Assembly (NCBI GenBank): GCA_030704615.1 | Contig: CM060732.1 | Span: 46,872,001-46,936,000 of the forward strand | DNA length: 64,000 nucleotides | Source of the DNA: Takakia lepidozioides | Taxonomy: Eukaryota > Plantae > Bryophyta | Direction of reading: 5' to 3' | Part shown: positions 4,790 to 30,900 of the stretch, in pieces | Numbering within the stretch: the stretch's first letter is position 1 | Layout: each line of letters begins with the position of its first letter | Translations under genes and position numbers: made by a program | Notes under the pieces: generated by a model | Databases searched by the model: none | Told to the model about the DNA's origin: nothing | Seen by the model: the letters and a program-made list of their open reading frames with translations, nothing else

Positions 4790-7700
4790 TTTGCAAACCG
4801 CGAGGCCTGGGAGTGGGTGCCTGGTATGTTGGAAAGCCCTCGAGGAGGAGAGGTGCACTGGCTTGGTCTCATGACTTTTGGACCTGTAGTGTGGGAAATA
4901 TGGATTTCCAAGTACTTTTGGTCGCTATAAATTCATGAAAAATAGCAAAGTGGGCAATCGTGGGACAATGGTGGGACCCTTGACAGGAGATATATCAAGG
5001 GAAAGCTCTCCAGTTCAAATCTGGTTGTAGGCTTTGTGGAAAAAACGATGAGATATGGCTAAAACGAATTTCAAGTACTTTTGGTCGTTGCACAATGATT
5101 GGAGCCGAGATATCAAGGGAAAGGTCGGTGGTTCAAATCTGGTCGTAGGCTCTGTGGAAAAAAAAAATGATCAAATATGGCTTGCTACATATATTGATGC
5201 ATTTGGACTTAGATGACATTGGACACACGGCATGCCGCGCTGCAACGGCATGCCGCGCGTTGCAACGGCATGCCGAGATGCTTTTGCAACGGCAAGCTGC
5301 AGATGCCGTCGCTGAAGTTGCTCGAAGCTGCACCCCAGCGGTCACCCTGCACGGCAATTAAGCCACCGGCCTTTGTAAAATCCCAAACATCATCACCAAT
5401 TTGGTGGAGGATGCAGGGCTTGGCACATGCTCACGGCACACGGATGTCAACGAATGTTGACCGTCTAGGAGCTCGCAATTGGCCCAACACGCGGTGGCAT
5501 GGGGTCGACCAAATTCTCAAGGTCATTGTGTCACTCATGGCAATGCGCAACACGTAGTATGTGCACACAACCCGCGTCCAACACATGGGTGGCTTGTGCT
5601 TGGGTGGCTTGTGCTTGTTATGGAGGGGAGAACTTAATGTGAATGGGTGGGCCACAGCTACGGTTCATTTTCAGAGACACACCAAGTGGGCCGCCATAGC
5701 TTCAGTAGCGGGGCAGATTTAGAGGCCACCATTGGAGAGCACCCCTCCTCATCGATGGCTTTCCAAGGGCACCAACACCAGGGCTGGCCCTGCGGTTCGG
5801 GACATCTCAACGTGACAAAACAAACAAAACAAACAAAGTGGCTTCCTTCATATATTGATAGGGTAGCCTCTACCAATAGAAAAAATAAAAAAGTGGGCAT
5901 TCGTGGGACAATGGTTGGAGCCTCGATGGGAGAGATATCAAGGGAAAGGTCTCCGGTTCAAATCTGTTCGTAGGCTCTGTGGGAAAAAAATTACTTAGAT
6001 GACATTGGACACTTGGGCCAACGGCAAAGGTTACCCTAGAGGTTGCATTTGGGCATCAACATAGGAGACGCACTTTGATACATAGGGGATTGCACTTGGA
6101 CTTAGATGACAGTGGACACTTGGGCCAACGGCATAGGCTTCCCTAGTCAATCTATGAAGCGAGACGATTGTTTTGTTTTGTTTTGTTTGTTTTGTCACGT
6201 TGAGATGTCTCAAACCACAAGACCCCAACACTGGTGCTTGGTACTGTTGGAATGCCCTCGACGAGGAGGGGTGCACGGGCTTGGTCTCATGATTTTTGGA
6301 CCCGCATTGTGGGAGATGTGGAATTCCAATTGCTTTTGGTCGCTGGAAATTCGTAAAAAATAGCAAAAATGGCAAAGTGGGCAATCATGGGACAATAGTT
6401 GGAGCCACGAGAGGAGAGATATCAAGGGAAATGTCTCCAGTTCAAATCTGGTCGTAGGCTATGTGGAAAAAAAATGATTTGGACTTAGATGACATTGGAC
6501 CCTTGGGCCAACGGCACATGCTACCCTAGAGGTCACATTTGGGCCTCAACATAGGAAACGCACTTTGATACATATGGAATTGCACTTGGACTTAGATAAC
6601 ACTCGACAATTGGGCCAACAACACAGGCTACCCTAGTATTGATATAAATGAAGCCAGTCTATTTGTTTTGTTTGTTTTGTCACGTTGAGATGTCCCAAAC
6701 CGCGGGGCCTGAGCGCTGGTGCTTGGTGCAGTTGGAAAGCCCTTTGATGAGGAGGGGTGCACCGATCTGGTCTCATGATTTTTGGACCTACAGTGTGGGA
6801 GATACGGAATTTCAAGTACTTTTGGTCGCTGGAAATTCACAAAAAATAGCGAAAATGGCAAAGTGGGGATTCGTGGGCAATGGTGGAGCCTCGACGGGAG
6901 AGATATCAAGGGAAAGGTCTCCGGTTCAAATCTGGTCGTAGGCTCTGTGGAAAAAAACTTACATAGATGACATTGGACACTTGGGCCAACGACAAATGCT
7001 ACCCTAGAGGTTGCATTTGGGCCTTGATATAGGAGACGCACTTTGATACATAGGGGATTGCACTTGGACTTAGGCGACTCTGGACACTTGGGCCAACGGC
7101 ACATGCTACCCTAGTCAAAAGCTAGTTTGTTTGTTTTGTTTTGTTTTGTCACGTTGACATGTACCGAACCGCGGGCCCAGCCCTGGCTTGGTACCGTTGG
7201 AAAGCCCTAGATGAGGAGGGGTGCACCGACCTGGTCTCATGATTTTTGGTTGCGGTGTGGAGATACGGAATCTCAAGTACTTTTGGTCGCTGGAAATTCG
7301 CAAAAAATAGCGAAAATGGCAAAGTGGCCATTCATGGGGCAATGGTTGGAGCCTTGACAGGAGAGATATCAAGGGAAAGGTCTCCGGTTCAAATCTGGTC
7401 ATAGGCTCTGTGGGAAAAAAAATTACTTAGATGACATTAGACACTTGGGCCAAAGGCAAATGCTACCCTAGGGGTTGCATTTGGGCCTCGACATAGGAGA
7501 CACACTTCGATACATAGGGGATTGCACTTGGACTTGGATGACACTGGACACTTGGGCCAACGGCAGAGGCTACCCTAGTCAATCTTTGAAGCGAGACGTT
7601 TGTTTTGTTTTGTCACATTGAGATGTCCCAAACCGTGAGGCCCCGGCGTTGGTGCTTGGTACCGTTGGAAAGCCCTCGACGAGAAGGGGTGCACGGGCTT

Positions 7701-9458
7701 GGTCTCATGATTTTTGGACCTGCGGTGTGGGAGATGCGGAATTCCAAGTACTTTTGGTTGCTGGAAATTCACAAAAAATAGCAAAAATGGCAAAGTGGGC
7801 ATTCCTAGGACAATGGTTGGAGCCTTGACGGGAGTGATATCTAGGGAAAGGTCTCCGGTTCAAATCTGGTCTAGGCTCTCTGGAAAAAGAAAAAATTATT
7901 AGATATGGGATTGCACTTGGACTTAGATGACACTAGACGCTTGGGCCTGTACATGGGAGATGCACTTGGATACATGAATAGAAGATTGCACTTGGGCTTA
8001 GAGGTCGCTCTTGGGCCTCGACATAGGAGACCCACTTGGATACATAAGAAATTGCACTAGGGCTTAGATTTCAAGTCTTCACACATGGGCCATGACATAG
8101 GAGATGCTACTTGAATACATAGGGGATTGCACTTGGACTTAGATGACACTGGATAGGGAATTCCAAAAAGGCCTCCATGTGAAATGCATTGCAATTCACT
8201 TGATCACCCCCCTAAAAGTGCGCAATTCAATTGAATTGCAAGGGCAATTCGATTGAACTGCTAAAACTAGCTTGAAAACAACCCTAATTTGCAATTCAAT
8301 TGAATTGTCGGCACACGATTCAATTGAATTGTTGACTGCAATTCAATTGAATTGCGAATTGGCAATTCAATTGAATTGCTGACTACAATTCAATTGAATT
8401 GTAATCTATAATTTTTAACTTGTTTCTGTATATATATGTACATATCTAAATTATACATATATGCATACAATAGTATAAGCTAAATATACATGTTGCCCGT
8501 CTATTCTTGCTGTCCATCTATCAATCCTTTGCCCTTGGTAAGGCTTGAGCCCGAGATAAGCCTAAGGGAGAGCGAGAGGGGGAGAGGGAGAGAGGAAGTC
8601 ACGAAACGCTTGTAAAAGCGAATTGTCCCTCTTTGTGGATGAATATATGTGCTATGTACTATGTACATATACCAAACATGATACCAATGTAAGAGTATCA
8701 ACGTATAAGAGTTTGATATATTAAACTTTATATAGAACACACATCCCAACATCCTCCGGCTCTCGGGTTTTGGAGCTGTTCCGTTTTTGATATCTTGCCG
8801 GTTGGCAACAAACATGATACCTTTGTAAGAGTATCGAAACAATATTATTTTTTTAAATTCTCAAGATGAACATATCATTTGTTTTCTTTGTCCTAGGCCA
8901 GATACTAGTGTTAGGGGACTACATGATGATGCAGGGGAAGCCTTTCATCAATTGTCAGGTTTGATTTTGTCTGTTTCTTTCAGAGCCAGCAATGTTTCTT
9001 TCGCCAGAAGCTGCTGATCCCTCTCCCTCTCTGACTCTCCCTTTCTCGCTCAGGCTGAGGCTGGCTTTACAACTCCACAATTTCCTCAAGGGCACAAGAA
9101 AGAGGGGCAACAAGAATAGACGGGCAACATGTATTTTTAGCTTATACTCTTATATGTGTATAAGTATAATTTGAATATATACATATACATATATTATTAT
9201 TATTATATACAGAAACAAGTTAAAAATTATAGATTACAATTCAATTGAATTGCCAACTCGCAATTCAATTGATTTGCAAATTCACAATTCAATTGAATCG
9301 TGTACTAGTTTTAGCAGTTCAATTGAATTGCTCTTGCAATTCAATTGAACTGCACACTTTTAGGGGGGTGATCAAGTGAATTGCAATGCATTTCACATCA
9401 AGGCCTTTGGAATTCCCTACACTGGACACATGGGGCCAACGGCATAGGCTACCCTAGT
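4790..9458 (+). repeat. Head-to-tail array of ~460-490 bp units, non-autonomous Helitron-like; dispersed shorter copy at 33072-33349
   Basis: Units begin TCAATCTATGAAGCGAG/(GTTTT)n and end GGCTACCCTAG|T (junctions ~6146, 6637, 7114, 7578, 9457). They share the core GATATCAAGGGAAAGGTCTCCGGTTCAAATCTGG. TC...CTAG ends are the Helitron hallmark. An inverted head lies at ~5735-5867. Confidence 0.65.
8154..9419. mobile_element. Non-autonomous foldback/TIR element (hAT-like) inserted in the last array unit
   Basis: Termini are TAGGGAATTCCAAA...TTTGGAATTCCCTA. Inverted arms (~8154-8508 and ~9111-9419) contain CAATTCAATTGAATTG repeats. The flanking duplication (A)CACTGGA is 7-8 bp, and the interrupted unit resumes after the element. 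Confidence 0.85.
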
Positions 9459-12299: not shown

Positions 12300-13850
12300 G
12301 CTTGTTTCAGGTTCGCTGAACTTAAATGTGATGCTGCCCACGAGGATATCGTACAGAATCACATCTGGTACAATTCCAGCTTTTGCGATACAACCATGCA
12401 CCTCTTGCCCTTTTCCAGGGCTGCCAGGCTTGCACAAGCATTGGAATCACAAACAAACATGATGTGGTTGGCCTCACCCCTTTGCACATCATTTGCTCAT
12501 AGGTCTCCAAAGCCTCCATCCCGCGCCTCTGCTGTGCATACCCTGCAAGCATCGCGTTGGGCAGTGTTCAGAATGACATTCCAGATTTGACGATGTCACC
12601 ATGGGCCTCTTTCCCCTTTTCCAGGGCTGCCAGGCTAGCACACGCACTGCAAATGCAAACATACGTGCCTTTAGTTGACCATCTACCCATGCAGGTTACT
12701 TGTAGCTATTGATCCACAGGGAATCATAGGTAATCTGGAGCTTGAAGTCCGGTCCCCTTTGATGAATCTCGACCCACACTCTATCCCTGCTCCTTCAACT
12801 ATCCATGCCTCTGCACAAATCATGCATACATCCTTGCCTTGCTGCTAGCAGCTGACAATGACAGCCTGTGACAGGCTCAATAAACTCTGGAATAGAGCTC
12901 CAAAGCCTCCATCCCGTGCCCCTGCTGTGCATACCCCTGCAAGCATCGCGTTCCACGACACCACATCTCGTTCAGCCATAACATTCGCATCCTTAATGCA
13001 CCCACATTTGGCATACATGTCCACCAAGGCAGTGTTCAGGATGACATCTGGTACAATTCAAGCTTTGACGATGTCACCATTGACCTCTTTCCCCTTTTCC
13101 AGAGCTCCCAGGCTTTCACACGCATTGCAAACACAAACAAACGTGATGTTGTTGGTTTTCACCCCTTCGCACATCATTTGCTCATAGGTCTCCAAAGCCT
13201 CCATCCCGCACCCTTGCTGTGCATATCTTGCAATCATCACACTCCACGACACCACATCACGTTCAGCCATACTCCATTTGCATCCTCGATGCACCCACAT
13301 CGCATACATGTCCACCAGGGCAGTGTTCAGGATGACATCTGGTACAATTCCAGCTTTTGACGATGCAACCATGGACCTCTTTACCCTTTTCTAGGCTTCA
13401 CTCCTTCGCACATCATTTGCTCATACATCTCCAAAGCCACCATCCTGCGCCCCTGCTGTGCATATTCTGCAACATCATGTTCCATGACACCACATTTCGT
13501 TCAGCCATACGGTCAAACACTCCCCTTTGCATGCTCAATGCTCCCACATTTGGCATACATGTCTACCAAGGTATTGTTCAGGATCACATCTGGTACAATT
13601 CCAGCTCTGAAGATGTCATTCAGCCTGCATATTGTTGAAAACTGCCTTTGCATCTTTAATGCACCCACATTTGGCATACATATTGTCCACCAGGGCAGTG
13701 TTCAGAATGACATCTGCTACAATTCCAGCTTTGACGAGGTCATCATGGACCTCTTTCCCCTTTTCCAGGGCTCCCAGGCTTGCATACACATTGCAAATGC
13801 AACCGAACGTGATGTGGTTGGGCTTCACCCCTTCACGCATCATTTGCTCA
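12300..13850 (-). pseudogene. Fragmented PLS-class PPR repeats
   Basis: Repeated [14 protein letters not shown]...[18 protein letters not shown]...EALETYEQM motifs with many frameshifts. Confidence 0.85.
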
Positions 13851-14139
13851 TACCCCTGTACCTCTGTTTACTAACTTTGAAAGTTTCGAGGTTGAACCTC
13901 ACCCTGAGTTAAAATTACAGTAGTGTCAAGGTTGCCCTTCACTCATCCATGTTACAAACCGGAAATGAGTTCAGGGTTTTATGCCTAACTGTTGTTTGGA
14001 CATTATGCATTCTTCCAACATGGCCTTGGACACATCAGCTTTCCAAGTTAACTTTCAAGTCAACTTCATTTTAGTAGGGTCAGTTCCTCTTGCCTAATAT
14101 TCAGGCACTTGAAATCTCCTCTTCCCGTTCTGCCAGGAC

Positions 14140-15280
14140 TTCACCTTTTGGACTGGATGTTGGCAGATCCACTACTTTCGTCTCCAGACACAAAACTAAT
14201 GGCCAGCTTCTCACTGTGGTGGCAAACAGAAAATTCCTTTTCTGTTTTTCTACAGCGACCTGGCTCCTTTCTAACTCCTCTAACCTTCATCATTCTTCTC
14301 ACCTTTGCAGTATTATCCCAATTACCAGCTGCAGCATAGATGGTTGATAGCAACAGCATCCAAAATCCAAGAGTATCACATTCCTGTTGGCTGAGGTAGA
14401 GGCATACACCTGAATGCCAAGCACCTGTTGCTTGCGCCCTAAGTCCAGCAGCAGATCTCGCAACTTCTACTCTGACATACGTTTCTGAATTTGCCCTCGT
14501 CTATGTTACCTGGTTCGGGATACTTTCTTATGTCAAATTGGCAGTATCAATCCCACACGCATGTTGTGCATATCCTGCAATCATAGCACTCCATGATACC
14601 ACATTTCGTTCAGCCATCCTGACGAACACTCCCTTTGCATCTTCAGTACTTCCGCCTTTGGCATACATGTCAATGAGGGCATTGTTTAGAATGACATCTG
14701 GTACAATTCCAGCTTTGACGATATCACCATGGACCTCTTTGCCATTTTCCAGGCTTGCACACACATTGAAAATGGAAACGAATGTGACCTGGTCTGGGTT
14801 CAACCCTTCCTGAATCATTTGCTCATAGGTCTCCAAAGCCTTCATCCCACACCCACGCTGAGCATATCCAGTGACCATTGCGTTCCACGAGATCACATCT
14901 CGTTCAGCCATCATTATATTCCACGTGATCACACCTTGTTCAGGCATTTTGTTGAACACTCAGTGTGCATCCACAATGCTCCCACACTTCACATACATGT
15001 TAACAAGGGTGTTGCATAGAAAAACGTTGGGCTTGAATCCACTTTGGATAATGTGAGCATGCACCTGTTTTCCGGCTTCTAGGCCTTTCATCTTGATGCA
15101 CTTATGCAAGAGACAGACATAAGTATCTGAATCTGCTGAATCTGCTGAAACCCTTCAAAATCTGTAGAGCCTCTTTCAGTTGCCCTGCCTCACATAGCAT
15201 CCTCACGTGCCCAGAAGTGCCAGAAGCGGTATTGTGGACTCCCTCTCTTGGTCCTCCCTTGGAAGCTGTGGCCATGGTGG
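14140..15280 (-). pseudogene. PLS-E/DYW PPR pseudogene with internal deletions
   Basis: N-terminal LCEAGQLKEAL, PPR motifs (14528-14959), E domain LLSTIYAAAGNW...VRKEPG, and a DYW remnant HSEKLAISF. Confidence 0.85.
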
Positions 15281-15698
15281 AGCACCTGATTTCAAATATG
15301 CCGCTGCCGCTGTTTCCAGTTGACCATCTACCCATGCAGGTTTCCTGTAGCTATCAATCCACAGGGAAACATGGGCACTATTGTGCTTGATATCCATCCC
15401 TCTTGGATGAATCTGGACCCACACTCTATCCCTGCTCTCCTTCAGCTATCCCTTACTCAACACCATTAATGCATAGACCTTGGCCTTGCTGCTAGAAGCT
15501 GACAATGACAGCTGAATTTTTTCTAGCAAACACCCAAACCCTACTGATCACACACTAGCTCCTACTCTGAATTGGTCCCAAGACTTTAAAAATGTGCTGG
15601 GGAGAGATTGTACTCATAAGACGTTGTTTGCCGTAGCCTTGTGGCCATTGACCCCGTGCCCAATTTGAGCGGGAACAAAAGGGACAGAACCTACCTCT

Positions 15699-16048
15699 TG
15701 TCAAGTTAAATAAGCACAGTGTGAAAACAGCTAGAATAAAACTAGTTATTTGTATTTAACACTTGGATTTAGGTCGTGTTAAATCAGGTGTCAAGTTTAG
15801 TTTGACACCTGGTCCGTCTTATCTTCACGAGAGCGGCAGTCGCGCAGCTCATCTCTCTCGAGTTGAGCCTGTGCGACCGAGCTCCTGCGTGCGTTCAGAT
15901 CTGAGTGTACTCATGATGGGAGTGTAGGTTGTTGGTGGGTGGAGTCCCCATAGCTTGGGGTGCCCCTGGCTCGACTACTATTTCAAAGAGTGATGATGGT
16001 TTTTGTTTTCAGGTTTTGTGTCAACAGTGTTTTCTAGTTTTCTTATCA
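15699..16048 (+). repeat. 5' LTR segment B (350 bp), repeated at 27494-27845
   Basis: Near-identical to 27494-27845, with only a few substitutions and a 2-bp indel by eye. Confidence 0.95.
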
Positions 16049-16062
16049 CTCGAGAGAGATGA
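16048..16062 (+). promoter_or_regulatory. Self-priming primer-binding site, complementary to LTR 15849-15863
   Basis: ACTCGAGAGAGATGA is the exact reverse complement of TCATCTCTCTCGAGT. No TGG-initiated tRNA PBS is present after the LTR. Confidence 0.75.
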
Positions 16063-16809
16063 CCTGTATCTAGTTTTCTAGTGCTAAGCTAGATGTGACG
16101 TTTTTGTTTTTAAGCACTATTATAATATAGCTTGGTCGCGAGCGCCGGTAGTTAGACTGGCTATGTGTGCCTAGTGGAGCATAACAGAAAGGCAGGAACC
16201 ACTCGAAGTGTCGCTACAGCAGTTCTAACCTCATGGGAATGTAGCGGGTCCAAGCTTTTTACAACAAGCAAGTGGGCTGGACCTGCTGTTTGGGTCTAAG
16301 AAGACTGGGTCGGCGGATAGGCCTCTATGGTTCCCAGGTGCAAAGGCCCCGTCTTGGGCTGGATGGATCTTTGGTCGGTGACGGTTACGCTATGGTGAAG
16401 TGGCGGATATGTGTAGGAACGTCACATGCAAACGAGTGCTTTGAGCGATTTAATCAAAAGATGATGTCTGCGGACATGTGGCACAGGTGTTCTCATCAAC
16501 TGTGCAGATTGAGCATCTGACAGTTGTGTTTGGCAGGAGTTCTGATCTCAGGGGTGAGCATTTGAAGGCAGGTTTGGAAAGGTTATTGATCTGGAACTCA
16601 TTGAGCCAGTGAGTTCCACTTAAAGCCATTTTGCTGGAGGAGATTGCTGATTATTGATGTTCCTGGAGCTTCAGGTGCAGGCCCTGCAATCGCTGGCTAA
16701 CAAGATTGATTTACAAGCAGAATCTGACGGGCAATCTGCCGAGAGCCTCATCTGCTTCTCGGAGGGGTTTCCGTAAAGGCCCGGAGAATTTAATCCATAC
16801 AATGGCAAC

Positions 16810-17082
16810 CTAGGTGAGGTACCAAATCAACTCTGAAGCAGTGGCTATGGCGCCACCAGTGATTGCCGTGCGAATCATCTTGTCGTGATTAAAAGTGATC
16901 ACGCTTTGTCACCCTTTCGTTCTTCAACATTGAGAAGGCCTCTAGCAATGTTCCATGAGCAGCTTCCACCCCTCCAATCTTGATGAAGCCGTCCAAAGTG
17001 TAGTTCAGAAAGGATGGCCCAAGTCCACCAGCACATCTATAGAGGGAGAGTCAACTCTCGCTGATAGCCTCGAGTGCGGCAT
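16810..17082 (-). pseudogene. OEP16: Captured chloroplast outer envelope pore protein OEP16 fragment (start and end present, middle deleted)
   Basis: MPHSRLSARVDSPSIDVLVDLGHPF/LNYTLDGFIKIGG...NHDKMIRTAITGGAIATASELIWYLT* matches the OEP16 N- and C-termini. Confidence 0.8.
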
Positions 17083-17175
17083 TTCGCTCTGCTTTCCTCA
17101 CACCCAAGTTCTTTCCTGCATCGGCAACAAATCTCTGCTGTCGCTGACGGATGGAGAGAGACACGGAGAGACGGA

Positions 17176-17364
17176 GATCTCATTGATGGCAAGAATCTGC
17201 CCGTGTGACCTCTTCACCTTCTTCAACTTCCTGAGGAAGTACCAAAACTTGGACTTTGCCCGCACTTCGTTGGTCGCCCACAACGTCATGCGGTACGCCT
17301 TCGGCTGCTCATCGGTTGGGGTAGGCAGTGCTCGCTCCACCACCTGGTGAAACCAAAAACTCAT
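17176..17364 (-). pseudogene. RPL18A: Captured 60S ribosomal protein L18a (eL20) N-terminal fragment
   Basis: [11 protein letters not shown]...[40 protein letters not shown]. Confidence 0.93.
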
Positions 17365-17441
17365 GGCTCTTGCCTGCTCTCTCTCTCGGATCAGCAGAAG
17401 CTAGAAGGAGCGCGAGACGGCCAATGCAGGCGCTGCCGAGT

Positions 17442-17765
17442 CTAAAAGGTAGGCTCATAACCATTGGTTGCAATGGCCAGGATGGCGAAACCAATGGCAT
17501 GACCCAGAGCTCCCCAAGCAAGCACATCGATGAGGGTGAAACCAGCGGGGTCATTCGTCTTCAAAAAGCCAACGACCTCCTGTGCCCGGCTATCACCGGC
17601 CTCGAAGTGAGTAACGCCATTTGTACAGGGAGTCCTTGCCTTGCAACATTGTCTCTCTGGAAGGGGAGGAACACAAATCGTCCCAGAAACAGAAGAGCTC
17701 CGGTGCTCAAGGAGATCACAACCGCGGCTCACATGCGAAATTGACCTGCTCTTGAGATCGCCCAA
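17442..17765 (-). pseudogene. PSAG: Captured photosystem I subunit G (PsaG) fragment with one frameshift
   Basis: [49 protein letters not shown]...[19 protein letters not shown]...NGYEPTF*. Confidence 0.9.
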
Positions 17766-18040
17766 AGAAGTGTAGCGAAGGGATAGCTGGCAGTTTCAGG
17801 GCGCGCAGCACTGATGGCACTCAAAGTGTGCTCTTGCTAGCATTTGGAACGCTCTCTATGCCCACATCTACAACCAGCTTCAGCTCCCAGTCCACCCACA
17901 TTTCTGCACCCTCCTCGCCATTTTCAGCCATCTGAGGAGCCTTGTTGCGCCCAGTCCTAAAGGTAGTGTTGCCTCGTCCACCCTAACCTCCCGACAGCAG
18001 CAGCTCCTGCTTCCATGGAGTTCCAGCAGAACATCGCCAT
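17766..18040 (-). pseudogene. OBGC: Captured chloroplast Obg GTPase (ObgC) internal fragment
   Basis: [72 protein letters not shown], corresponding to the end of the Obg fold plus the G1 and G2 motifs. Confidence 0.85.
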
Positions 18041-18421
18041 TCCTTCCGTCTTCCAAACGCCGTGGCCTCTGTGTTGACATTGGCTTCACCTGCTTTAACC
18101 TTGAAAAAAAAAAAAAAAAAAAAACTATTATGAAGGTTTGAAGAAGGAGTCCAAGGAATTCTTAGGGAACCTGTAGTGAATCCCAACAGACGTGGGAACA
18201 GTATTTAATGGTGAGAACGTTTTGGTGTTAAAAAAAAAAAAAAACCTTTTGATCTAATTTAAAGGATTCAGAGCCTGGTTGGTCATATCTTTGTCACATG
18301 AGCTCCGTTTGACTCAGTTCTTGAGGGATAGCGCAGAAAGGGGAAATCTACCTATCTAGACCTGGTTTTTGTTTTTGGGACTCTGCTAAAATCTATGGAA
18401 TTTTTAGAGTGTGAGTGTGCT

Positions 18422-19253
18422 ATGAAAGATCCACAATCTTGTCTCTAGAACCTGTGCTGGTCTATATGAGAGACAAATTGGTGGATGTACTCCTTGCATG
18501 GCTGGGGGAAATGAGGACGTAATTGAAGGGCAGGTCTCTTCTCTTAGTCTGTGCACACAAGGGGACAGGATTTATGTTTCCCAAGGAACTCAGACTGATT
18601 TGAGTGGAGGAACAGTTGGACGAGTTGATTGCATACTGGGAGTCAGGCATTAGCAGTAGACAACAGACTGCTGTAGTTGGCATTGAGGGCCTCAATATCG
18701 CTTGGACAGTCAGAACTCTGTTGGAGCCAGCAGTTCTGCAGCTGTAGGTGAAATACCAAAGTGGGTGAAAGCTAGGCTTGGAACACAGCCAAAGACAGCC
18801 CCGGGGACCAAGGTGTTTAGCCACAAGGCCGTGGTGTACTGGAGCAGAGGAGCAGGAGCTACACAGGTTTGTGCAATCAGACATGGTTGCAGCGGAGGAT
18901 ACGCTCTACACAGGGCAACCACGAGCGGGGGTTCATCAGCAACGACATGTTTGTTGTGCGTGAAGGAGATGCAGTCAGTCATCGCAATGAGGACACCGCA
19001 ACCGTCTCAAAGCTTTCGAGTTGAGAGACTATCAGACCTACCTTTGTTTTTTTAGTGTTCAGTGAGCGGGATAGAGCTAGGGGAGTATTGCTTTGTCTCT
19101 ACCTGGCAGAAAGAGGAGGAGGGTGGTTTAGAGCGAGCTACTGTAGCTTGGGACAAGGTTAGTGGTAGGTTTCTGGACATAGATATACCTCCTACACCTT
19201 ACCATCACGCAGAGCGAGGCACTTTGAGAGAAGTCTGGAAGTTGATAGCATAG
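18422..19253 (+). pseudogene. Disrupted extra ORF upstream of gag, function unknown
   Basis: Protein-like segments across frames (DKLVDVLLAWLGE..., VGEIPKWVKARLG..., ELGEYCFVSTW...REVWKLIA*). No family recognised. Confidence 0.35.
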
Positions 19254-19799
19254 ATCAGGATTAGATCTTGCTTGGGCGGGCTTCTATTCTTCCCCTCCAT
19301 CTCTGTACTATTTTCATTACCTTGTACTCGTAGTTGCCAAGCCTCTCTTGGTGGAGGCCAGTCAGTCCGGGGTTTTGGGCTGGGATATTCTGCAGGATCA
19401 GCATTGCAGCTGGATTTTGGTGTGGGGGTGTGTTTGATGTTTTGATTTCTGTGTTTGGATCCCCCCCAACACCTGCATGCTTGACTGTGTGCCATGTTGG
19501 TTTTGTGTGGGCGCTTGCTTTCATAGGGATTAGGCCGGATTTGATCACCGGTCAATCCTAGAGTATGCTGTCGGTGGTGAGGCTGGTGGAGTGATGACCA
19601 GCAAGACCACCAGTGTTTCTTCTATGGTGCGGCTGGGTTGATGACCAGCCAACCATAGGAGTTCTTGCGGTGGATGCAGGTGCAGGTGCCCTGAGCCTTG
19701 GGATATGACCCTTAAACTGCCAACAGGTGCCCACCCGTGTCACTATTAGATAGTAATAGAGCTATTATAGTGTCAAGGGAGAAGGAGGTGCACATTGGA

Positions 19800-21330
19800 G
19801 TCTGGCATACGAGTTACCCAAGGGTTTTGAGGGGAGTACGGCTATAGGACAAGTAACAGTGAGAGTAGGTTAACAAGACGAGGTATTCGGTTCAGACCAC
19901 CTTCACCACCACCCTCAATTACTGTAGAGTCATACACAGACTCGGAGGCTTCATCAACAGGTGTGCACTTTCATTCGCCATTGTTGTGGGACGACATGGA
20001 GGAGATGTATGGAGCTACCAAGGGGCCTCGTAGGTACTCTGGAGCTGTGGGCACAATCGAGTTTGAATGACTTTATCCAGGAGTTCGACAGCTGGTGTGA
20101 TTTGCAGCAGATGCGCAATCCACAGCTATTCACCCCATTCATGGCGTGGAAGGGACTGTTCCAGCATTTGGAAGGCCCGCCTATGGACGATTACCACGAG
20201 TTCAGACGAGGACATGAAGCAGAGATTGAGGAGTGGAGGATTGTATTGGTCACTTGACTACGTCTCCATTACTCGAGGCACGACGCGACCAGTAGCTGCA
20301 TCAGTACCAATAGCTCCCACTGCCAGCACTAGTAGTGGAGCAAGTAGTGCTGGTACTTCTGTAGGTGGTACCAGTTCAAAAGGTGCTACTACTCTTCCTG
20401 CCACGACTACAACACATGTGCCTAGATTCAACCCGGTGGTGGAGTTCTTCCAGGAGTTGCGAGGAGGAACTACAAGGTGTACGGACAGAGAAGCTGCAAA
20501 GTTTGCAAGACTTCCAGCGCAAACCCAGTGAGAGCCTGCGAGAGGCGTACACTCGTATGAGGCGCTTGATAAGTGTGACCCAAGGGTTACTGAAGCTCAG
20601 GCAATCCAGTTTTGGTATGGAATTCTGGATAAGGAGCTCAAGAGAAGGGTGCGAGATGCAACCCTGTTACAAGCAGCCCAACCCACATTAGCAGATGTGT
20701 TTCTGCTGGCTGAGCGGATTGAGCTCAACATGGTGGAGGAGCGAGTTGTTACCATTGGATTTGGCAAGGACATGCCTACACGAGGTGTAGCTGCCAGCCC
20801 ACAGGCACAAGGAACCGCTCAACAGCGTGGTCAGGGGGGCAAGGTGCCCAGCCCAAGTTCTATGGAGCTTACAGGGGACCTCAGGTGCAGAGGTCCGTGG
20901 CATCTTTTGCAGGCCAACAGCAACCAGGGGTGATATGTTGGACATGTGGAGGACCCCATGTCAAGAGAGATTGCCCAGAGAGTGGCAAAAGGCCGGCACA
21001 AGCAGATAGCCTGCACAGTTGCAGTGTGGGCATTGTGGCAAGTATGGGCATGGAGATGCCCAGTGTTATGACTTGCACCCTGAGTTGCGCCCAGGCCAGT
21101 TCCAAGGGAACAATGGTGGCCGGGGGCGAGGTGGGACCAGCCCAGAGAGGACGAGGTGTGGTCGGGCACGAGGTGCAGGCCAAGGGCAAGCTCCACATGG
21201 CCAAGGACGCGGAGGTCAGGGTGTTGAACAAGGCATGGCCAACCGGCTTCAGCAGCTAGAGCAGAGGCTCGCTGCCATGGCTATAGCTCAGGCGTGGGCG
21301 GTAGCTGGCAGGCTAGGTACGCGGCCCTAG
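19800..21330 (+). pseudogene. gag (frameshifted) with two zinc knuckles
   Basis: NDFIQEFDSWC..., LQDFQRKPSESLREAYTRM (retrotransposon gag), CWTCGGPHVKRDC and CGHCGKYGHGDAQC. Confidence 0.85.
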
Positions 21331-21949
21331 GCGGGATGGTCCACCTCCTGCTCCTGAGGGAGGAGACATGGGAGGCATGGGATTCATGTGCGGAGCAGCA
21401 CTACCACTAGAGCAGGTGGAGTCTGCCGCAGCCGTGACTCGAGGAGCAGCACGAGTTCCTGAGCCACGAGGTGCAGAGGTGGAGTTGGATCCACAACGTG
21501 GGGAGGCAAGCCGTCAAGCGAGGCTGCCTCAGTCATTCACCTTGGCGGAGACAGTGTCAACGCCATCCATGGCACCTAGTTCTCGCCCGACTGTTACCGA
21601 GGCGGAGGTTTCTATGCCATTGGGGAGAGCTACACGTGCCAGCATTGACTCCTGCTGCCAAGGCTAGTGCGGCCGGTGTGTTATTGGGGCAGCCACCTCT
21701 GTGTGTCAGGCCCCACTGTTCTCGGCAACAATGATTGCGACGCCGGGGGTAAGGCCAGCTGCAGTGTTCAGACTGGCAGCAACACTCTGTGAGAGTGGGG
21801 AGGTCATTTCATCTTCTGCGGAGTTAGTGGAAGGTGTAGTGGCAGATGGATCCTCGGATTTGAGGGTCAAGATTGCCACGGCTGCGCCCTGGCAAGCTGC
21901 AGCTGCCAGGTTGACGGAGCTGCCAGCTAGGCCAGCCTTTGAGCGCGCC

Positions 21950-22410
21950 ATGGTGACACCTGGAGTTGTTTTGTTAGACAACCAGGGAGGCATTTTCACT
22001 TTGAGTGGACCGGCAGGCAAGAAGTACCGGCCACTGTGGGTCTTGTTGGACTCGGGAGCTCAGCCACTGATGTTGGGCAGAGCTGCTATTGCAGGTTGGC
22101 CTCATGGAGGCGGATATGGAGCCTTGCCCTTTCCAGATACAGACATCTCTGGGAGGATCAGAGCAGGCTCGGGGCATGACACGGCATCAGTTGGCCATTA
22201 GACTGCAGCCGGATCATCCTATCGATGGGCTCAGTAATGCGAGCCAAGGCCATTGTGACAGATCAATCTCTTACGATGTCCTCGTTGGTGGGGCAGTGTT
22301 ATATCCCATGGGCTTCACCCTGGACTTTGGGGGAGAGTCAGCATCCTACAGGCCTAGATGGCAGTCAGGCGATGGTCGCCGTGCACAGCTCCCTGTGACA
22401 TTCATTGGGG
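21950..22410 (+). pseudogene. Aspartic protease domain
   Basis: WVLLDSGAQPL motif and downstream YDVLVG. Confidence 0.85.
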
Positions 22411-22749
22411 TATAGCGGCTGCCAGCGGGGGCAAGATGCCAACACTAGCCGCCTTTACAACTGCAGTTAGTTGGCCTGGGAGAGTTGCTGGAAGGCAATG
22501 CCCATGCAGAGGATGTGCCACCTCCAGCAGAGCAGGATGACATGCATGGTATGGCGGAGTTGCCTGCCATGGTTGCTCACACTCCATTGTGGGGTACGAG
22601 CAAGGATTTGTTAGCAGGTTGCTGATCGACGGGTACAACAAGCCTGGGTAGAGGCTTTTGTTCCGTCAAGAGAGGAGGAGAGTGCGGGTATTGCACCAGG
22701 ACCACCTCTGTTGTTGCCATTGGACACCACACCTCTTGTGTGGCAGCGG

Positions 22750-23730
22750 CCGGATGAAGGCATATGCCTTCTGGACTTGTTTGGCGGGATCAGCACTGGA
22801 TTGGCTGCAGTGTTGCAGGCAGGTGTACGAGTTCGACGTTACCTGTATGTGGAGAGGGATGAGACTACACGACGCGTCTCACTGCGCCATGTTGCTCAGA
22901 TGGTGCAGCAGTACCCTGAGTTGTTGCCGGTGTCTGCAGTTCGTGGGATATCAGCAGGCCTTGCCAACAGACATTGCGTTGCTGGGGGGCGCAGGATTGG
23001 AGCGGGGTTGGCTCCATTGATCTGGTAGTGGCAGGTTGGCCCTACCAAGGGCATTCATCAGCCGGGCATGGCAATGGATTGCGAGACTCGAGGACGGGTC
23101 TGTTTTGGGAGATGGTGCGGATTTTTGCGGCCACTTGCAGCTTCATCAGGCTGCTGTATCTCCGGCATACATCTTGGAGAATGTGCCACTGATGGGTGAT
23201 TCTCGGGCCAGGTGATGGCCAGTGTGCATCAAGTCCGGTCGTGGCTTGGGTCAGCAGTGTTGCTGGATGCAGCTGCAGTGGGGTCACGGGCTCATCGTCC
23301 ACGGCTTTGGTGGACTAACTTGATGCCACCCGCACTGCTCAAGCGTGCATTTGATGGGGTTGCAGCGCCCAGCACACCTCACCGTGGATGGCATTTTGGA
23401 CACAGGGAGGCAGTCTCAACGGTGTGAGACATAATGACCGTTCGCCGTTGGCAGTGGTCAACAGGATGGGTCACCCACGAGCAGCATTACCTACATTGCT
23501 CAGCTTCCCAGGCTCCCATGCTTTTCGGGATGGTGGACCTGGCCTCCTGTGGGATGCTCAGTTGCGCAGCAGTTAGTGGAGCCTAATGCGACGAGCGAGA
23601 GCGGGCTATGGGGTTTTCCACTGGGACCACGGCGGTGGTTGCCCTCTTTCTGAGGCATCACGTCGTCAGGTGTTGGGGCAAGCAATGGATCTCAATTGCT
23701 TGACCTGGATTGTCAGCTTGGCTATGGCTG
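22750..23730 (+). pseudogene. C5 cytosine DNA methyltransferase domain (Dnmt3/DRM-like) within pol
   Basis: Motifs in canonical order: I LLDLFGGISTGL, II YLYVERD, IV IDLVVAGWP[Y]QGHS, VI YILENVP, VIII DAAAVGSRAHRPRLWWTNL, IX ERERAMGF, X SEASRRQVLGQAMDL. Confidence 0.9.
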
Positions 23731-24169
23731 AGCAACGTAGAGTGCGGAGTGCACTTCCCTTGACGGTCTCTCTGCCTACCGAGACGGTACAGGCAGCGAG
23801 TGGGGGCGAGCCGGTGAGGACCACGGGGTGTGTAGACATCCATGGCACACGTGGGAGGTGCTCGAGGTTCAGAGGGAGTGGCAGCAAGGCAGCTGTGATG
23901 GATGAGGTTGGGGATTCTTCTCGGGATGAGGAGGTTCTCAATGATGAGATGATGGGGCAGGATGAGGCCTTGTCATTGACTGAGCAGGAAGGGAGTACTG
24001 CTCAAGAGGTTGCAGCATAGCAACCACGGGACGCGTCCTCTACCTCTAAACCACTGGACTTAAGGTTGCAGTTACGGAGGACAATTGGGAGCCTGACATT
24101 GGACCCATTGTCACTGGAGGGAGAGAGACGACGTATACGGCGGTTCCTGAGGGCTTACAGGAATTGCTT

Positions 24170-25500
24170 TGCCTTCAGTTTGAAGGACTGGGAGCACTGA
24201 AGGGTCAAGAGATCCGTATTTGAGTTGGCCACTGACACGCCAATCTTTCGGAGACCCTATAGATATAGTGACATGGAGAGGTCTTTGATTCAGATGAGGA
24301 CTCAAGATCTCTGGGAGGCAGGTTTGGTGGAGCTCTCTGGTGGAGAGTATGCTTAGCCACAGTGATGCCAGCTAAGAAGGATGTCTATGGCAATTGGACG
24401 GAGAGACGTGTATGTGCGGTGATTACCGGCCTGTAAATCGTCAGACCAAGTCCGATAGGTATGCCATGCCAACACCAGAGGAGATCTTTGATGCCAATTG
24501 GGCATTCCAAGGTCTTTAGCACGTTGGATTTTACGATCCAGATATCACCAGTTGCCGATCAAGGAGGCGGATAAGCAAAAGACGGCATTCTGGGGGATCA
24601 ATGAGCACACGGAAGGATTGCCTATACCAGTGGCGGTTCTTACCATTTGGGCTTAAAAACGCTCCCGCTGAGTTTCAAAGAGTCATGGACAGGATTCTAG
24701 CAGGGGGAGTTTGCTCGGTGCTACATAGATGACATCATCATCTTTAGTGCTACGGTGGAGGAGCATGAGAGACACCTTCAGGGGGTATTTGAGCGCTTGA
24801 GGACGCACGGATTGAAGTTACATCCGGGCAAGTGCAAATTTTTCCACAACCAGATTGAGTATCTTGGTCACATGATATATCCTGGAGGATTGGGGTACAG
24901 CAGAACTAAGGTAGAGTCCATTGCACAGGTTCCACGCCCCACGGATGTGAGCCGAGTTCGAGCTTTCATGGGGTTAGCAAACTATTACAGACGGTTTGTT
25001 AAGGGATTTAGTGCCATGCAAAGGCTCTAACCAACTGACCAAGGTGGACCAGGAGTGGCAGTGGGAAGATGAGCAAGAACAAGCTTTTCAAGAGCTCAAG
25101 GCGAGGTGACCTCGGCGCCCATCTTGAGACGACCTATCAGGGGCGTCCTTTTCAGTTGCATACAGATTGGAGCATGCTGGGGCTTGGAGCGGTGCTCACA
25201 CAGGTGGATGATGAGGGAGAGAGTTCGTAGTGGCTTATGCTAGCCGCTCGAACAATGCTGCAGAGTCTAAGTATAGCTCATATGAGGGAGAATGCTTAGC
25301 TGCAGTGTGGGCCGTGGCACACTTCAGGTGCTATCTATACGGCATCTCTTCACCCTTGTCACGGATCACCAACCACTCAAGTGGTTGATGGAGTCAGACA
25401 AGCTTACGGGGAAGCTTGCACGGTGGGCACTCATCCTTCAAGAGTATGACTTTCAGGTGGGTGCATCGACCGGGGGTTCAATCGCAATGCAGATGGGTTG
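24170..25500 (+). pseudogene. Reverse transcriptase and RNase H (frameshifted)
   Basis: MCGDYRPVN, LPFGLKNAPAEFQRVM, CYIDDIIIFS (~24722), LHTDWS, YEGECLAAVWAV, LVTDHQPLKWL. Confidence 0.95.
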
Positions 25501-25859
25501 AGTCGCAATCTATGCACGAGCCAGCAGGATGACACTGGAGCTCGGTGGCATGGTGAGACGGACAAGGAGATGGTGCCCGGATGGCATGCATCTGCATTCT
25601 GTGTATCTTTGGCAGCGGAAGGCCAGGTTGGACCCTGCAATAGGGATAACTGTAGATCAAGTGTCTGAGGACCCTGAGGCCAACAATGAGCAAGGTGGCG
25701 CCAAAGATATACATGAGGATTCAGTTGTGTTGGACTACCTCCGCACTGGAGACACGGCAGCCACTGTGACTGCCAAGGAGAGGATCGATCCTACAACGAG
25801 CCAAGAGGTTCAAGTGGGAGGGGACACACCTGCTCCGAGTGTGGGAGGATGGTCGAGTG

Positions 25860-27146
25860 AGGATTGTGCCTCACCCAACACAGCGAGCACGGTTAGTGCG
25901 GCATGCCCATGAGGAGTTGGGGCATTTTGGAGTGCGACGCACTCATAGTCTACTGCAGGGGCAGTATTGGTGGCGTGGTATGCACACCAGAGGTGCAACA
26001 ATTTGTGGCTAGGTGCATGGGTGTGTGACAAGGTGCGTGCTTCATTCAACGCCCCTACTCCACAATTGCACCCTCTTCCGATCATGGGATTGGGCTACAG
26101 GTGGAGTCTTGACTTCGCAGGGCCGTTGCCACTGACCATGCGCTCACAACAAGTATGTGTTGGTGATGGTGGAGCACTTCTCCAAGTGGATTGAGTTGGT
26201 TCCATTGCCTGATAAGGGCTAGTGAGGGAGCTGCGTATGCATTCTTGGATTGTGTGCTTAGCCGATTCGGTGCTCCAGCTGAGGTACTCACGGGACAAGG
26301 GAGAGAGTTCTTGGGGGAGTTTCAGGCTTTGGTGACAAGGCCTAGACCACCGCACCACTTCTCGGGATCATCCTGAGGCCGATGGCTTGGCAGAGAGAGT
26401 TGTTCAGACAGTGAAGAGGGGTTTGCGCAAGTATGGCTTGCAGAAAGGACACTAGGAGATTGGGACCTTCAGTTACCCTGGTTAGCCATGGGCTACAGGT
26501 TCAGCAAGCAAGCATCAATTGCCTCCTTCTCACCATACTTTCTTCTCTTTGGCCGAGAGCCGGATTTGCCTACATCCATTCGCAGAGAAGCTACTACAGT
26601 TCTTAACCTTGACGATCCGGACGTGTGGGCACGTGCATGTGAGCAGCGTGTAGAGTTGTTCAAGAGAGTCATGCCCATGGCTTTCGAGAACCTTGCCATT
26701 GCACAACACCGTGATACGTTGAGGTATGCTACCATACGTGGTGGGGGCTATCGTCCTGGGGTTCGGAGATTCAACCCTGGTGACTATGTCTATCTGCAGC
26801 AGACTGCTCCTACAACCCTGGATGTGACTGCAGGATGTGTTATTTTAAGGGTTCGAGAGGTCTTGCCCTCAGGCGTCTTGGTCTTGGAGGTCGGGATGAC
26901 ATAACTTGGAAGGACCATGTTCGTAATTGTGCGCCATGTCACCTTCCGAATGTCGATGGCAGGATTGACCCAAACCTGGCAGCGGTATCTGCAGGTTTGA
27001 GGTGCATGTTGTGTGGGTCTGCTAAAGGGGCAGCCACCATGCTGGTGTGCGATCGATGCTCTAAAGGTTGGCATATGGGATGCTTGACTCCACCTCTTGA
27101 GATGGTTCCAGATGGGGATTGGTTATGTCCATATTGCATTGGATAG
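25860..27146 (+). pseudogene. DDE integrase with C-terminal PHD finger (26995-27146)
   Basis: HEELGHFG...C (HHCC), WSLDFAGPLP, GLAERVVQTVK, SPYFLLFG. The C-terminal CMLC...CDRC...WHMGCLTPPL...W.CPYC is a C4HC3 finger. Confidence 0.92.
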
Positions 27147-27406
27147 TGGGAGTGGATACAACCATGGAAGGCTAACAAGCAACGCAAGGCCCAGCTACTA
27201 GGAGACCTTGAACACACGAGATCCTGGCTCAAGTTCACAGATTGCAAGACGACGACTAACGATGGGGCTACTCTTATACCCGGCCCCTTGGTCTATAGAG
27301 TTTGAGTACAATAGGAACAGTGATAGAGGACTTAGTACGGCTATGGCTATTACATCTTGTAGCTATCTGGAGGTAGAGGGACCTATCCACCAGCTAGGGG
27401 GGCGAT

Positions 27407-27931
27407 TGTGGTAGACTACTTTATTGTGCATATATGTGTGGTGTGGTTTGGACAGCGATGTAGTTGTGTAGCGATATGTATGCGCACGACAGCTGTCAAG
27501 TTAAATAAGCACAGTGTGAAAACAGCTAGAATAAAACTAGTTATTTGTATTTAACACTTGGATTTAGGTCAAGTGTTAAATCAGGTGTCAAGTTTAGTTT
27601 GATACCTGGTCCGTCTTATCTTCACGAGAGCGGCAGTCGCGCAGCTCATCTCTCTCGAGTTGAGCCTGCGCGACCGAGCTCCTGCGTGCGTTCAGATCTG
27701 AGTGTACTCATGATGGGAGTGTAGGTTGTTGTGGGGTGGAGTCCCCATAGCTTGGGGTGCCCCTGGCTCGACTACTATTTCAAAGAGTGATGATGGTTTT
27801 GGTTTTCAGGTTTTGTGTCAACAGTGTTTTCTAGTTTTCTTATCATTGTGGTAGACTACTTTATTGTGCATATATGTGTGGTGTGGTTTGGACAGCGATG
27901 TAGTTGTGTGGCGATATGTATGCGCACGACA
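27407..27931 (+). repeat. 3' terminal block A(27407-27491)-GC-B(27494-27845)-T-A(27847-27931)
   Basis: The two 85-bp A copies differ at one base. The full LTR A+B runs TG...CA directly after the PPT. Confidence 0.95.
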
Positions 27932-30900
27932 CTCTGTCAGGGGCTGACGTTGGTAGTAAGACTTACCTCCATATAAAGAATTAATCCGGGTTTTCCAGAT
28001 ATCCTCTAGAAATCCCTTCACACAAGCATCAATCTGTTGTGTGTGATTTGCCCAAAAACTAGGCCTCAGGAGGGCCTGGGCTTTTGGCTCAGCCTCAAGA
28101 CTTTCAAAGTTGGTAAACAGGGGTACGGGCACAATTCCCTTAATAGATTTGAAGAGAGCGTCTCTTTGGTGAGAGAACCCCGGACAGTGTATCAGAAAAT
28201 GAATACTGTCTTCAGATTGCCCACACAACGGGCAATTGCACTCTCCCTTTCCTCTCTGCTTCAGTTTGCTGTTCAAAGGTAGGCTTCCTGCCTTGAGTTT
28301 AAATTTCAGTCTAGTGCCGAGAGTGGGTAGACCCTTGAGGTCATCCAAGATGTCCTCCCCCATGTCACAGACTAGAAACAAGTTCAGGGAAGTTTTCTGC
28401 CTAACTTCATTTTCATCAGACAATCTCATGGCAACAGACATGGCTGAGGACATTACAGCCTCTAAGTCAGATTTATCCAGCAGGGTCAAGACTTGCGGAT
28501 CCAGGTCCAGGTCCTTGAGGATCTCTTCTACTCTCTTCTACCAGGACTTAGCCTGTTTGACAGGGCGGTCCTGTTTCCAAGATATAGAGTCGATTAACTT
28601 AGGATATCTGGTGTTGGGCATATGTTGCAGCTGACCCCACCATCTGACCTTAAATTCATCTCGTTGGGAGCTTAAGGACGGAATGCCAAACTCACCCCGA
28701 ACAGCCACATTGGCTGTTTTGGAGCATGCTGACATACACTCCTTAAGCACCCCCACTTGAATGGATTCTAGAGACTTAGGCTGGTTGGAGTTATCAACCC
28801 ATATAGCAGATCCGTACTCCAAGGCAGGTCTAATAACGCGACAAAGCATGGTTTTCTTAACCTCAGAGTTGACCCCTCTGCAGTGGAAAAATTTAGTGAG
28901 CCCCAGAGCTTTGCCCTTGCCAGTTTGAACAACTTTCCGGATATGTGCATCCCAATTACAATTGGAGGAGAACTCAACACCCAGGTAAGTGTAGGAAGGG
29001 AGGACCGGGATCTCTTGGCTACCCCACTGCCACTTAAGATCACTTCCTCCCTCTCCTCTGTCGTTGAATGCTACCACTGCACATTTGCTGACATTAGCCT
29101 CTAGCCCCCAAAGATCAAAGTATCTCTTCGCGCAATCAATCAACTCCTGGAGATTGGTTGGAGTCTCCCCTATGCCTGCGAAGTCATCCGCAAACATAAG
29201 GGCTGGTATGGTGGTATCACCCACCCTTAACCCAAATCCCTCACTTTCCACATCCTCGAGGAGTTGATTGATGAAAACATTGAAGAGCAGAGGGGAGAGA
29301 GTACATCCTTGAGCTACACCTTGGTCTATGTCAAAGAAGTTGGACTTCTGTCCGTTAACAGTGACACAGCTTTTGGTGTGAGCATACAAGTTGTGGACAA
29401 CTCTCCACATCTTTCCCTTGATCCCACAAGACCAGAGGCGGAACCATAGGCCATCTCTCCACACTGTGTCATAAGCCTTTTTGACATCCAGGAAAAAGAC
29501 ATAAGTGGGTTTCCCTTCTTTTTTCCTTCCCTGGATAATCTAGCTTAGAGTGAAGATATGATCCACACAGCCCCTGTTTCGCCGAAAGCCAGCTTGGCCT
29601 TCGTGGAAACAACCTCTAGACTCCAGATCAACCTCTTCCCGCTATATAAGTAACAGCAGGTAGGTTGTAAATCATAATCGCATTGGTCCTACATTGTCCC
29701 ATATTGATTGCCCGTAGTCTACATCGCGTAGGATACTTAAGCAGATGGGGTCTACGGGAGGTGGTCCGGATGGTGGAGGCCTGTAGTAGGGCTCCGTATA
29801 CAGGGCTCCATATGTATATGGAGCCACACTACTCCGTCATAGCTGGCCTCCTCAGAGCCAATCAGAAGGCGGCTATGCGGCAAGCAAGCTGCTCTCGACT
29901 GCTACAGAGTTTGTATGTCAGGACAGCCGTCCTATATTTTCTATTTCCATGGAAACATTGTGACCCTATTATCTTCTTTTTGTGCTCACGCCTCCATTAT
30001 GCACACCTGTGCTCACGTTTTACTACTTACGCCTTCCCTTGTTCAAAAAGAAGTTGAGTAACTTAGGTGCTGGGAGTTAGTGTCCCTCCTCGCTCTTTGA
30101 ACTTGTGCTCAGGGTTCTGCCCTATGCTATCTGTTTACTATTTACCTGTTTTGTTACCGGTTTAGGTGACCTGCCCAAGGGGGGGCACTATTTTCAGGCG
30201 TGTGTGTGTTTCCTGCTTGCTTATGTGGTTATGGGTTCCTAGTGTGTACGCCTTATTATGGCACTATGCCAGGGGTTTTTTATTTTTTCCCCTCAATTTA
30301 TAAGAATTGACCACCAGTAAATAGAACAGTGACCACCCAGGTGATTCTGGTTTCAAATCCTGCCACCTTGTCAGGTGTGATATATCCAGTGTTGGAGTGG
30401 TATATAGATGAAGGACTGGTAGATGTTCTAGTATATGCACTGGTATTAGATACCAGACCAGGCTGGTATCAGTTTTTTCATACTAACCACAATACCCGTA
30501 CTTCCCCCTTCCTCCCCCCCCTCTTTCTCATTTACTCTAGTATGTGTACTATATAAATTTATGTTTACATATGCCTACATATTTGTACTCATGTATATTT
30601 ACTTCTTTATGTGTATTGTATTTGTTTTCACATGATACCTACTTGCTATTTGATACACTTGTAATTCAAGATGGCTTTGGAATGATACCAGAATGATATC
30701 TCATACCAGCTGGTATTGTGATTATGATACTCATACTCATACCAGTATCTAGCAAAAAATACATCCACGATTATATAGACCAAACTGGTATGAAAGTTTT
30801 GTGATATGTCTGGTACCAGGACCAGTCTGGCACGTCCTAGAGCTGAGCAACAGTGGTATAAGCTTCTCCCCCTTCCCTTGGGTGGTGTCCCTAGAGCCTT

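Follow-up and report, generated by a model that had tools for sequence, protein, structure and literature searches.

The window, a stretch of 64,000 nucleotides from contig CM060732.1 of the moss Takakia lepidozioides, holds on its plus strand a decayed Ty3/gypsy element of 12 kb that carries a chain of host gene fragments, here called the cassette. On the minus strand, from 16810 to 18000, pieces of an Obg GTPase gene, of PsaG, of eL20 (RPL18a) and of OEP16 follow one another head to tail: four genes in five pieces, each of them truncated, and each either abutting its neighbour or parted from it only by a UTR-like spacer. The cassette sits in the 3.9-kb leader of the element, between the primer site and gag, and is antisense to gag-pol. 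This host-derived sequence lies between both LTRs, with the left repeat and primer site (15699-16066) on one side and the gag-pol domains and the right LTR on the other, in agreement with the initial annotation of the locus, which had placed it in the 5' leader in antisense orientation.

The carrier element

The left LTR (part B; 15699-16048, plus strand) has TG...CA ends and is 98% identical over 352 nt to positions 27494-27845. Adjoining the LTR end is a primer-binding-site-like stretch (16048-16066, plus strand) that is complementary to 15845-15863 inside the LTR itself; the two form a 19-nt inverted repeat in which 18 of the 19 positions (95%) are complementary, and by our estimate about 0.002 such 19-nt complementary pairs would be expected by chance in the 4.6-kb region. 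When the sequence after the left LTR is read directly, no tRNA-type TGG primer site is seen. The arrangement suggests self-priming of the Tf1 type in a plant gypsy element, a layout of this kind being known from Tf1-type elements.

The decayed gag-pol region extends from 19961 to 27146 on the plus strand. Its zinc-knuckle gag was recognised in the list of open reading frames, and the pol domains were found by Pfam: a C5 DNA methylase (DNA_methylase, 1.3e-6), a reverse transcriptase (RVT_1, 1.7e-14), an RNase H (RT_RNaseH, PF17917, 3.4e-10), an integrase zinc domain (Integrase_H2C2, PF17921, 1.6e-10) and a PHD finger (3e-11); Pfam did not detect an integrase core (rve) in the carrier pol. The plus-strand order RVT_1, RT_RNaseH, Integrase_H2C2 is that of a gypsy element. 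The C5 cytosine DNA methylase domain (22920-23189) stands ahead of the reverse transcriptase, and the PHD finger (26835-27146) stands after the integrase. Since the gag-pol frames are broken many times, this copy of the carrier is dead.

At the right end of the element (27405-27939, plus strand), LTR parts A and B together occupy 27405-27845 and are followed by a second part A at 27846-27939. The first part A is 89 nt long (27405-27493) and comes directly after a purine tract, AGCTAGGGGGGCGA. The layout of the element is thus B, internal region, A plus B, and A again, the first 94 nt of the right LTR being repeated directly behind it and missing at the left end; this resembles an LTR-LTR junction or the arrangement called 'split direct repeats'. 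Reverse transcriptase ORFs of LINE-like character lie on the minus strand at 27818-29634, abutting the right end of the element, and at 40553-41430 and 42523-44323, and a LINE-like stretch of 1.7 kb recurs at 98% identity 14.7 kb further on, partly inverted.

Identity of the gene fragments

The pieces of the broken fragments were searched separately. The Obg GTPase fragment (17765-18000, minus strand) covers the end of the Obg fold up to the G1/G2 region, and matches GTP1_OBG in Pfam (1.8e-7) and B. subtilis Obg in PDB (1e-11). The next Obg piece, in another frame, is colinear with ObgE residues 176-197, and identity to a plant contig (L087) is 72-82%. One in-frame stop and at least one frameshift, at 17824, interrupt the fragment, which may extend to about 18040.

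The PsaG fragment (17442-17725, minus strand) holds the mature protein, starting near residue 76 and ending with the native stop, and has a frameshift near 17625. Its coding part (17725-17445, followed by the stop at 17444-17442) matches PSI_PSAK in Pfam (1.8e-11) and the PsaG chains in PDB (7e-31), and Sphagnum PsaG shares 97% identity with one half of it and about 80% with the other; a word search with PsaG returned no near-identical sequence. Three of the captured genes had been said to encode chloroplast proteins, which holds for PsaG and OEP16 only, the third gene being identified as far as an Obg GTPase and not to the paralogue ObgC.

The eL20 fragment (17175-17364, minus strand) starts with the native ATG at 17364, continues through exons A and B in spliced form and ends with 4 nt (ATCT) of exon C. 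It matches eL20 in PDB over residues 6-67 (2e-29) and is 83% identical to a full-length moss-like cDNA; a 6-nt deletion in it removes two codons, and Pfam returned nothing for this piece. The exons were mapped by a metagenome scan in which 80 loci were fetched. Of these, about 50 are genomic contigs of plants, with the exons visibly broken behind W43 and E64; six others are cDNA-like and uninterrupted, and the remainder match more distantly or only in part. The sequence in the window is unbroken across the W43 site. After AATGAG it has no GT but ATCT, the four bases with which the third exon opens. A splice site as the end of the fragment was ruled out, as the fragment runs 4 nt past the exon junction. 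That the fragment ends (17171-17181) just 4 nt past an exon-exon junction may be a coincidence.

Two spacers accompany the eL20 fragment on the minus strand, and with their lengths of 77 nt and 92 nt they bear out the UTR-like spacers that had been described between the fragments. By direct reading, the 77-nt spacer (17365-17441) would comprise the start of the PsaG 3' UTR and then a CT-rich stretch like an eL20 5' UTR, the point of division being our reading of the sequence; the cDNA alignments around it end at the eL20 ATG and at the PsaG stop codon. The 92-nt spacer (17083-17174), also read directly, is pyrimidine-rich and is probably the OEP16 5' UTR.

OEP16 is present as two pieces on the minus strand. 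The N-terminal piece (16898-17082) runs from the native Met1, whose ATG is at 17082, to about residue 62, with a 1-nt deletion near 17010, and the C-terminal piece (16810-16893), found by tblastn, covers residues 121-147 approximately, up to the native stop at 16812-16810, with 56% identity to Selaginella OEP16 P0068 (E 1.6e-6). Altogether, three colinear tblastn pieces match Selaginella OEP16, at residues 1-25, 21-62 and 121-147. A library-wide HMMER search with a 53-residue piece gave five matches, of which the two best are long repeat proteins and were taken as spurious; the other three are OEP16-sized, two of them carry Pfam Tim17, and they include the Selaginella 'outer envelope pore protein 16, chloroplastic' (E 9e-4). 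A word search with the OEP16 piece gave no candidate, Pfam returned nothing for the OEP16 pieces, and Atlas provided a weak lead to related envelope proteins. Judged by these matches, the identity of OEP16 appears weaker than that of the other three fragments, but consistent. Between its two pieces about 55 codons are missing. Exon skipping was ruled out as the source of this gap, which extends from inside exon 3 to the middle of Selaginella exon 6; because its bounds ignore exon ends, it is a deletion or an intramolecular jump.

As a whole, then, four unrelated host coding fragments on the minus strand are present where the initial annotation had located them, with matches far above chance, and the series ObgC, PsaG, RPL18a and OEP16 that it gave stands as Obg GTPase, PsaG, eL20 and OEP16, with the amendment that OEP16 is in two pieces with the gap between them. 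Native start and stop codons are indeed kept, the ATG in eL20 and OEP16 and the stop in PsaG and OEP16. All fragments are disabled by frameshifts, a stop or deletions, none being intact, and at the DNA level they are about 80% identical to the closest orthologues available. Elsewhere in the whole window there are no further matches to the Obg, PsaG, eL20 or OEP16 genes. A chimeric ORF of 88 amino acids was looked up in public assemblies by exact match and is not on record there.

Spliced origin of the fragments

The intron positions used here are those of orthologues in other species, not those of the host's own genes, and each of the four fragments crosses at least one such position without an intron. 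The Obg intron of contig L087 (GAAAT/gt..ag/GTGG) is read through in the window as GAAATGTGG. PsaG has one intron in Sphagnum fallax and Ceratodon purpureus (GACAAT/gt...ag/GT, at about codon 102), and this moss intron position is read without a break as GACAATGTTGCA. For eL20 the relevant position is the W43 site described above, and for OEP16 the Selaginella introns after codons 38 and 55 are both read through, this last test being the weakest of the four because another contig (L086) is without the first two introns. Since orthologue intron positions are read through in all four fragments, their origin is in spliced mRNAs. Single exons accompanied by intron sequence had been named as the sign of capture at the DNA level; what is found instead is four spliced fragments and no intron sequence.

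The possibility that the cassette is a separate, nested Pack-type element had also been raised. No inverted repeats bracket the cassette, so that terminal inverted repeats are absent, and its flanks hold no direct repeat of more than 22 nt. A Pack-type or nested LTR element is therefore unsupported. On the minus strand, no A-run occurs within 690 nt after the OEP16 stop. A search of the leader against Rfam gave nothing real.

The remainder of the leader

The stretch from the primer site to the OEP16 stop measures 744 nt. The leader outside the cassette (16067-16810 and 18130-19960) was searched on both strands, as twenty stop-free stretches, against Pfam, with no match, and likewise no match was found for three leader pieces in PDB, one of them straddling the right border of the cassette, for one piece in Atlas, or in IMG/VR scans with integrase and gag pieces.

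A run of 23 A residues (18106-18128, plus strand) borders the cassette on the gag side, and a second run, of 15 A residues (18234-18248), also lies to the right of the cassette, the two being 121 nt apart. On the other side, a T5GT5 run with an AT-rich palindrome (16100-16133) is found 34 nt to the right of the primer site. The A-runs and the T5GT5 run may be switch sites or remnants of poly(A).

A minus-strand ORF at 16629-16453 has a plant-like start context, starts AAAATGGC and reads MALSGTHW...KPAFKCSPLRS...VRCS, which is similar to a chloroplast transit peptide. It has no match in Pfam or PDB. A fifth captured mRNA may follow OEP16 downstream in the chain, with this ORF as its 5' end.

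Proposed origin of the cassette

We consider it probable that the cassette arose through template-switch capture from mRNAs and is functionless cargo of the element. According to this model, spliced and abundant host mRNAs would have been packaged in the particle together with the element RNA, and the element's own reverse transcriptase would have jumped from one host mRNA to another, producing a chimeric cDNA. This cDNA would have become fixed in the leader between the primer site and gag, would have been copied in later rounds of retrotransposition, and would then have undergone neutral decay.

The junctions between the fragments bear on the direction in which the chain was made. The complete-looking 5' end of OEP16, with 5' UTR and ATG, abuts an internal site of eL20 near 17174; eL20, whose 5' end likewise looks complete, is joined near 17410 to the PsaG 3' UTR at a point 30-odd nt past its start; PsaG and Obg are both cut internally. 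Exactly this pattern is expected of a reverse transcriptase that ran off at the 5' end of each template and landed inside the next mRNA, and the order would then be OEP16, eL20, PsaG and Obg, so that synthesis would have proceeded from left to right in the window. We tentatively propose, as the simplest reading, though one that we hold with less than even confidence, that the capture occurred during plus-strand DNA synthesis. In that case the mRNAs would have been copied into the plus-strand DNA of the element, the nascent strand, complementary to the mRNAs, being the element's plus strand, and synthesis may have gone back to the element at the A23 run. With a single plus-strand event of several jumps, the uniform antisense polarity would not call for four events. 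The initial annotation had described the fragments as serially captured from spliced mRNAs; the spliced state is upheld, whereas serial capture is not required, as a single event with several jumps fits the chain and its polarity equally well. Its further statement that uniform antisense orientation is hard to explain by template switching was overstated, given that plus-strand copying of mRNA yields antisense and that maize Sirevirus captures show no orientation bias (10.1101/777037). For plus-strand capture of host mRNA, limited literature searches found no published precedent. A return to the element at an A-rich site is invariably seen in one Drosophila gypsy family (PMC5131818).

The same features might have been produced by a LINE, and we regard it as unlikely that a LINE reverse transcriptase made a chimera by template jumps during target-primed reverse transcription, which landed backwards in the gypsy leader and was then amplified. 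LINE-made chimeras have a shared orientation and run-off at template 5' ends, and their 3'-side pieces keep complete 5' ends, as in the cassette. LINE-like reverse transcriptase ORFs moreover adjoin the element and recur within the window, and the T5GT5 run near the primer site could be the remnant of a poly(A) tail. A chimeric retrogene made by a LINE, however, has a poly(A) end and target-site duplications on its flanks. In the cassette neither hallmark of a classical LINE insertion is seen: past the OEP16 end, the minus strand shows no clear poly(A) tail, and a target-site duplication is absent. The long homopolymer that does exist, which is T23 when read on the minus strand, stands at the 5' end of the chain, the wrong one for a tail. 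LINE chimeras of several cellular RNAs are documented, and the tripartite pseudogene of Magnaporthe is like the cassette in the direct fusion of different transcripts, which is ascribed there to template jumps (PMC2104539). Capture at the DNA level, whether by a nested Pack-type DNA transposon, by a Helitron or as break-repair filler with genomic exons, is largely refuted and seems to us extremely improbable. Pack-type elements and Helitrons often carry several gene fragments (10.1101/777037), but here all four fragments are spliced, terminal inverted and flanking direct repeats are lacking, and random ligation would be unlikely to give one polarity throughout at least five joined pieces.

Selection is the other way in which such an array might have come to be kept, with the RNA of the element, or small RNAs, pairing with essential host transcripts, either so as to restrain the silencing of the element (as 'hostage' or camouflage) or so as to regulate host genes. 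The cassette is antisense to the transcript of the element, as a device of this sort would be, and there are published models in maize (10.1101/777037) and for TART-A and nxf2 in Drosophila (PMC7785250). We nevertheless judge it highly improbable, with the fragments decayed and of no more than about the DNA identity given above, the carrier copy dead, and the genes matching a sampling of abundant mRNAs. The captured genes are presumably, for the most part, sources of abundant mRNAs in green tissue, and nothing points to a function of the cassette. Beyond functionless capture by template switching, one may imagine a self-priming gypsy family with a hot spot behind the primer site, in which plus-strand synthesis would repeatedly capture host mRNAs backwards and so build a variable antisense library feeding small RNAs against abundant transcripts, as hostage or camouflage or in gene regulation; this broader proposal is speculative, and we think it very improbable.

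Comparison with known systems

The capture of several host fragments by LTR elements is already established (PMC13317346, PMC5131818, 10.1101/777037). Bs1 of maize is an LTR retrotransposon with three transduced host gene segments, and the likeness lies in several unrelated, truncated host fragments inside an LTR retrotransposon that were propagated with it (PMC13317346). The cassette differs from Bs1 in that its fragments are antisense, disabled, and placed in the leader ahead of an otherwise complete, if decayed, gag-pol.

Tan et al. (2016) described retroposition by LTR template switching across animals, including the two-gene CG4799_CG11924_r and the four-gene 'Super' retrocopy of the mouse; they also reported secondary retroposition, one family that repeatedly returns at an A-rich site, and a Drosophila gypsy family whose switch points lie near exon junctions (PMC5131818). 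Their cases resemble ours in being partial, intron-free copies of mRNAs, with several genes chained inside an LTR element; in them, however, part of the ORF of the element was replaced and the mRNA was copied in first-strand synthesis (PMC5131818), whereas here gag-pol is kept and the antisense chain lies beside the primer site.

About 3% of maize Sirevirus elements hold captured exon fragments, and 15% of those hold two or more; since these captures show no orientation bias, antisense cargo is common (10.1101/777037). In the 'epigenetic conflict' model of Muyle et al., silencing of the element also hits the donor gene (10.1101/777037). The idea of the initial annotation that silencing of this element could affect the parent genes amounts to that already published model, and is for the present locus a candidate reading: the conflict in maize was measured with siRNA and methylation data (10.1101/777037), while it is the antisense orientation alone that is seen here. 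TART-A of Drosophila is similar as a retrotransposon with a piece of a host gene, nxf2, and a possible source of antisense small RNA, but there the host gene is a component of the silencing machinery and its capture had a measured effect (PMC7785250), whereas the genes of the cassette are photosynthetic or housekeeping genes.

By itself a single locus of this kind is ordinary. A limited literature search found no described case in mosses of an LTR element chaining host mRNAs, and the cassette would be a clean, dissectable bryophyte example of an LTR-element reverse transcriptase joining spliced host mRNAs. Its value is in the mechanism: plus-strand capture is suggested by the combination of seemingly complete 5' ends at two of the junctions with antisense polarity and a place beside the primer site. 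Should the cargo of the family prove to vary, at a single site and mostly in antisense, the family would lend itself well to a study of the frequency of capture and of any epigenetic cost to donor genes.

Repeats to the left of the element

Tandem repeats of a unit of about 470-490 nt form an array at 4794-7904, and one of these units is found again at 33075-33273. Just to the left of the element, at 12351-15512, is a second repeat field, made up of repeats of 120-300 nt.
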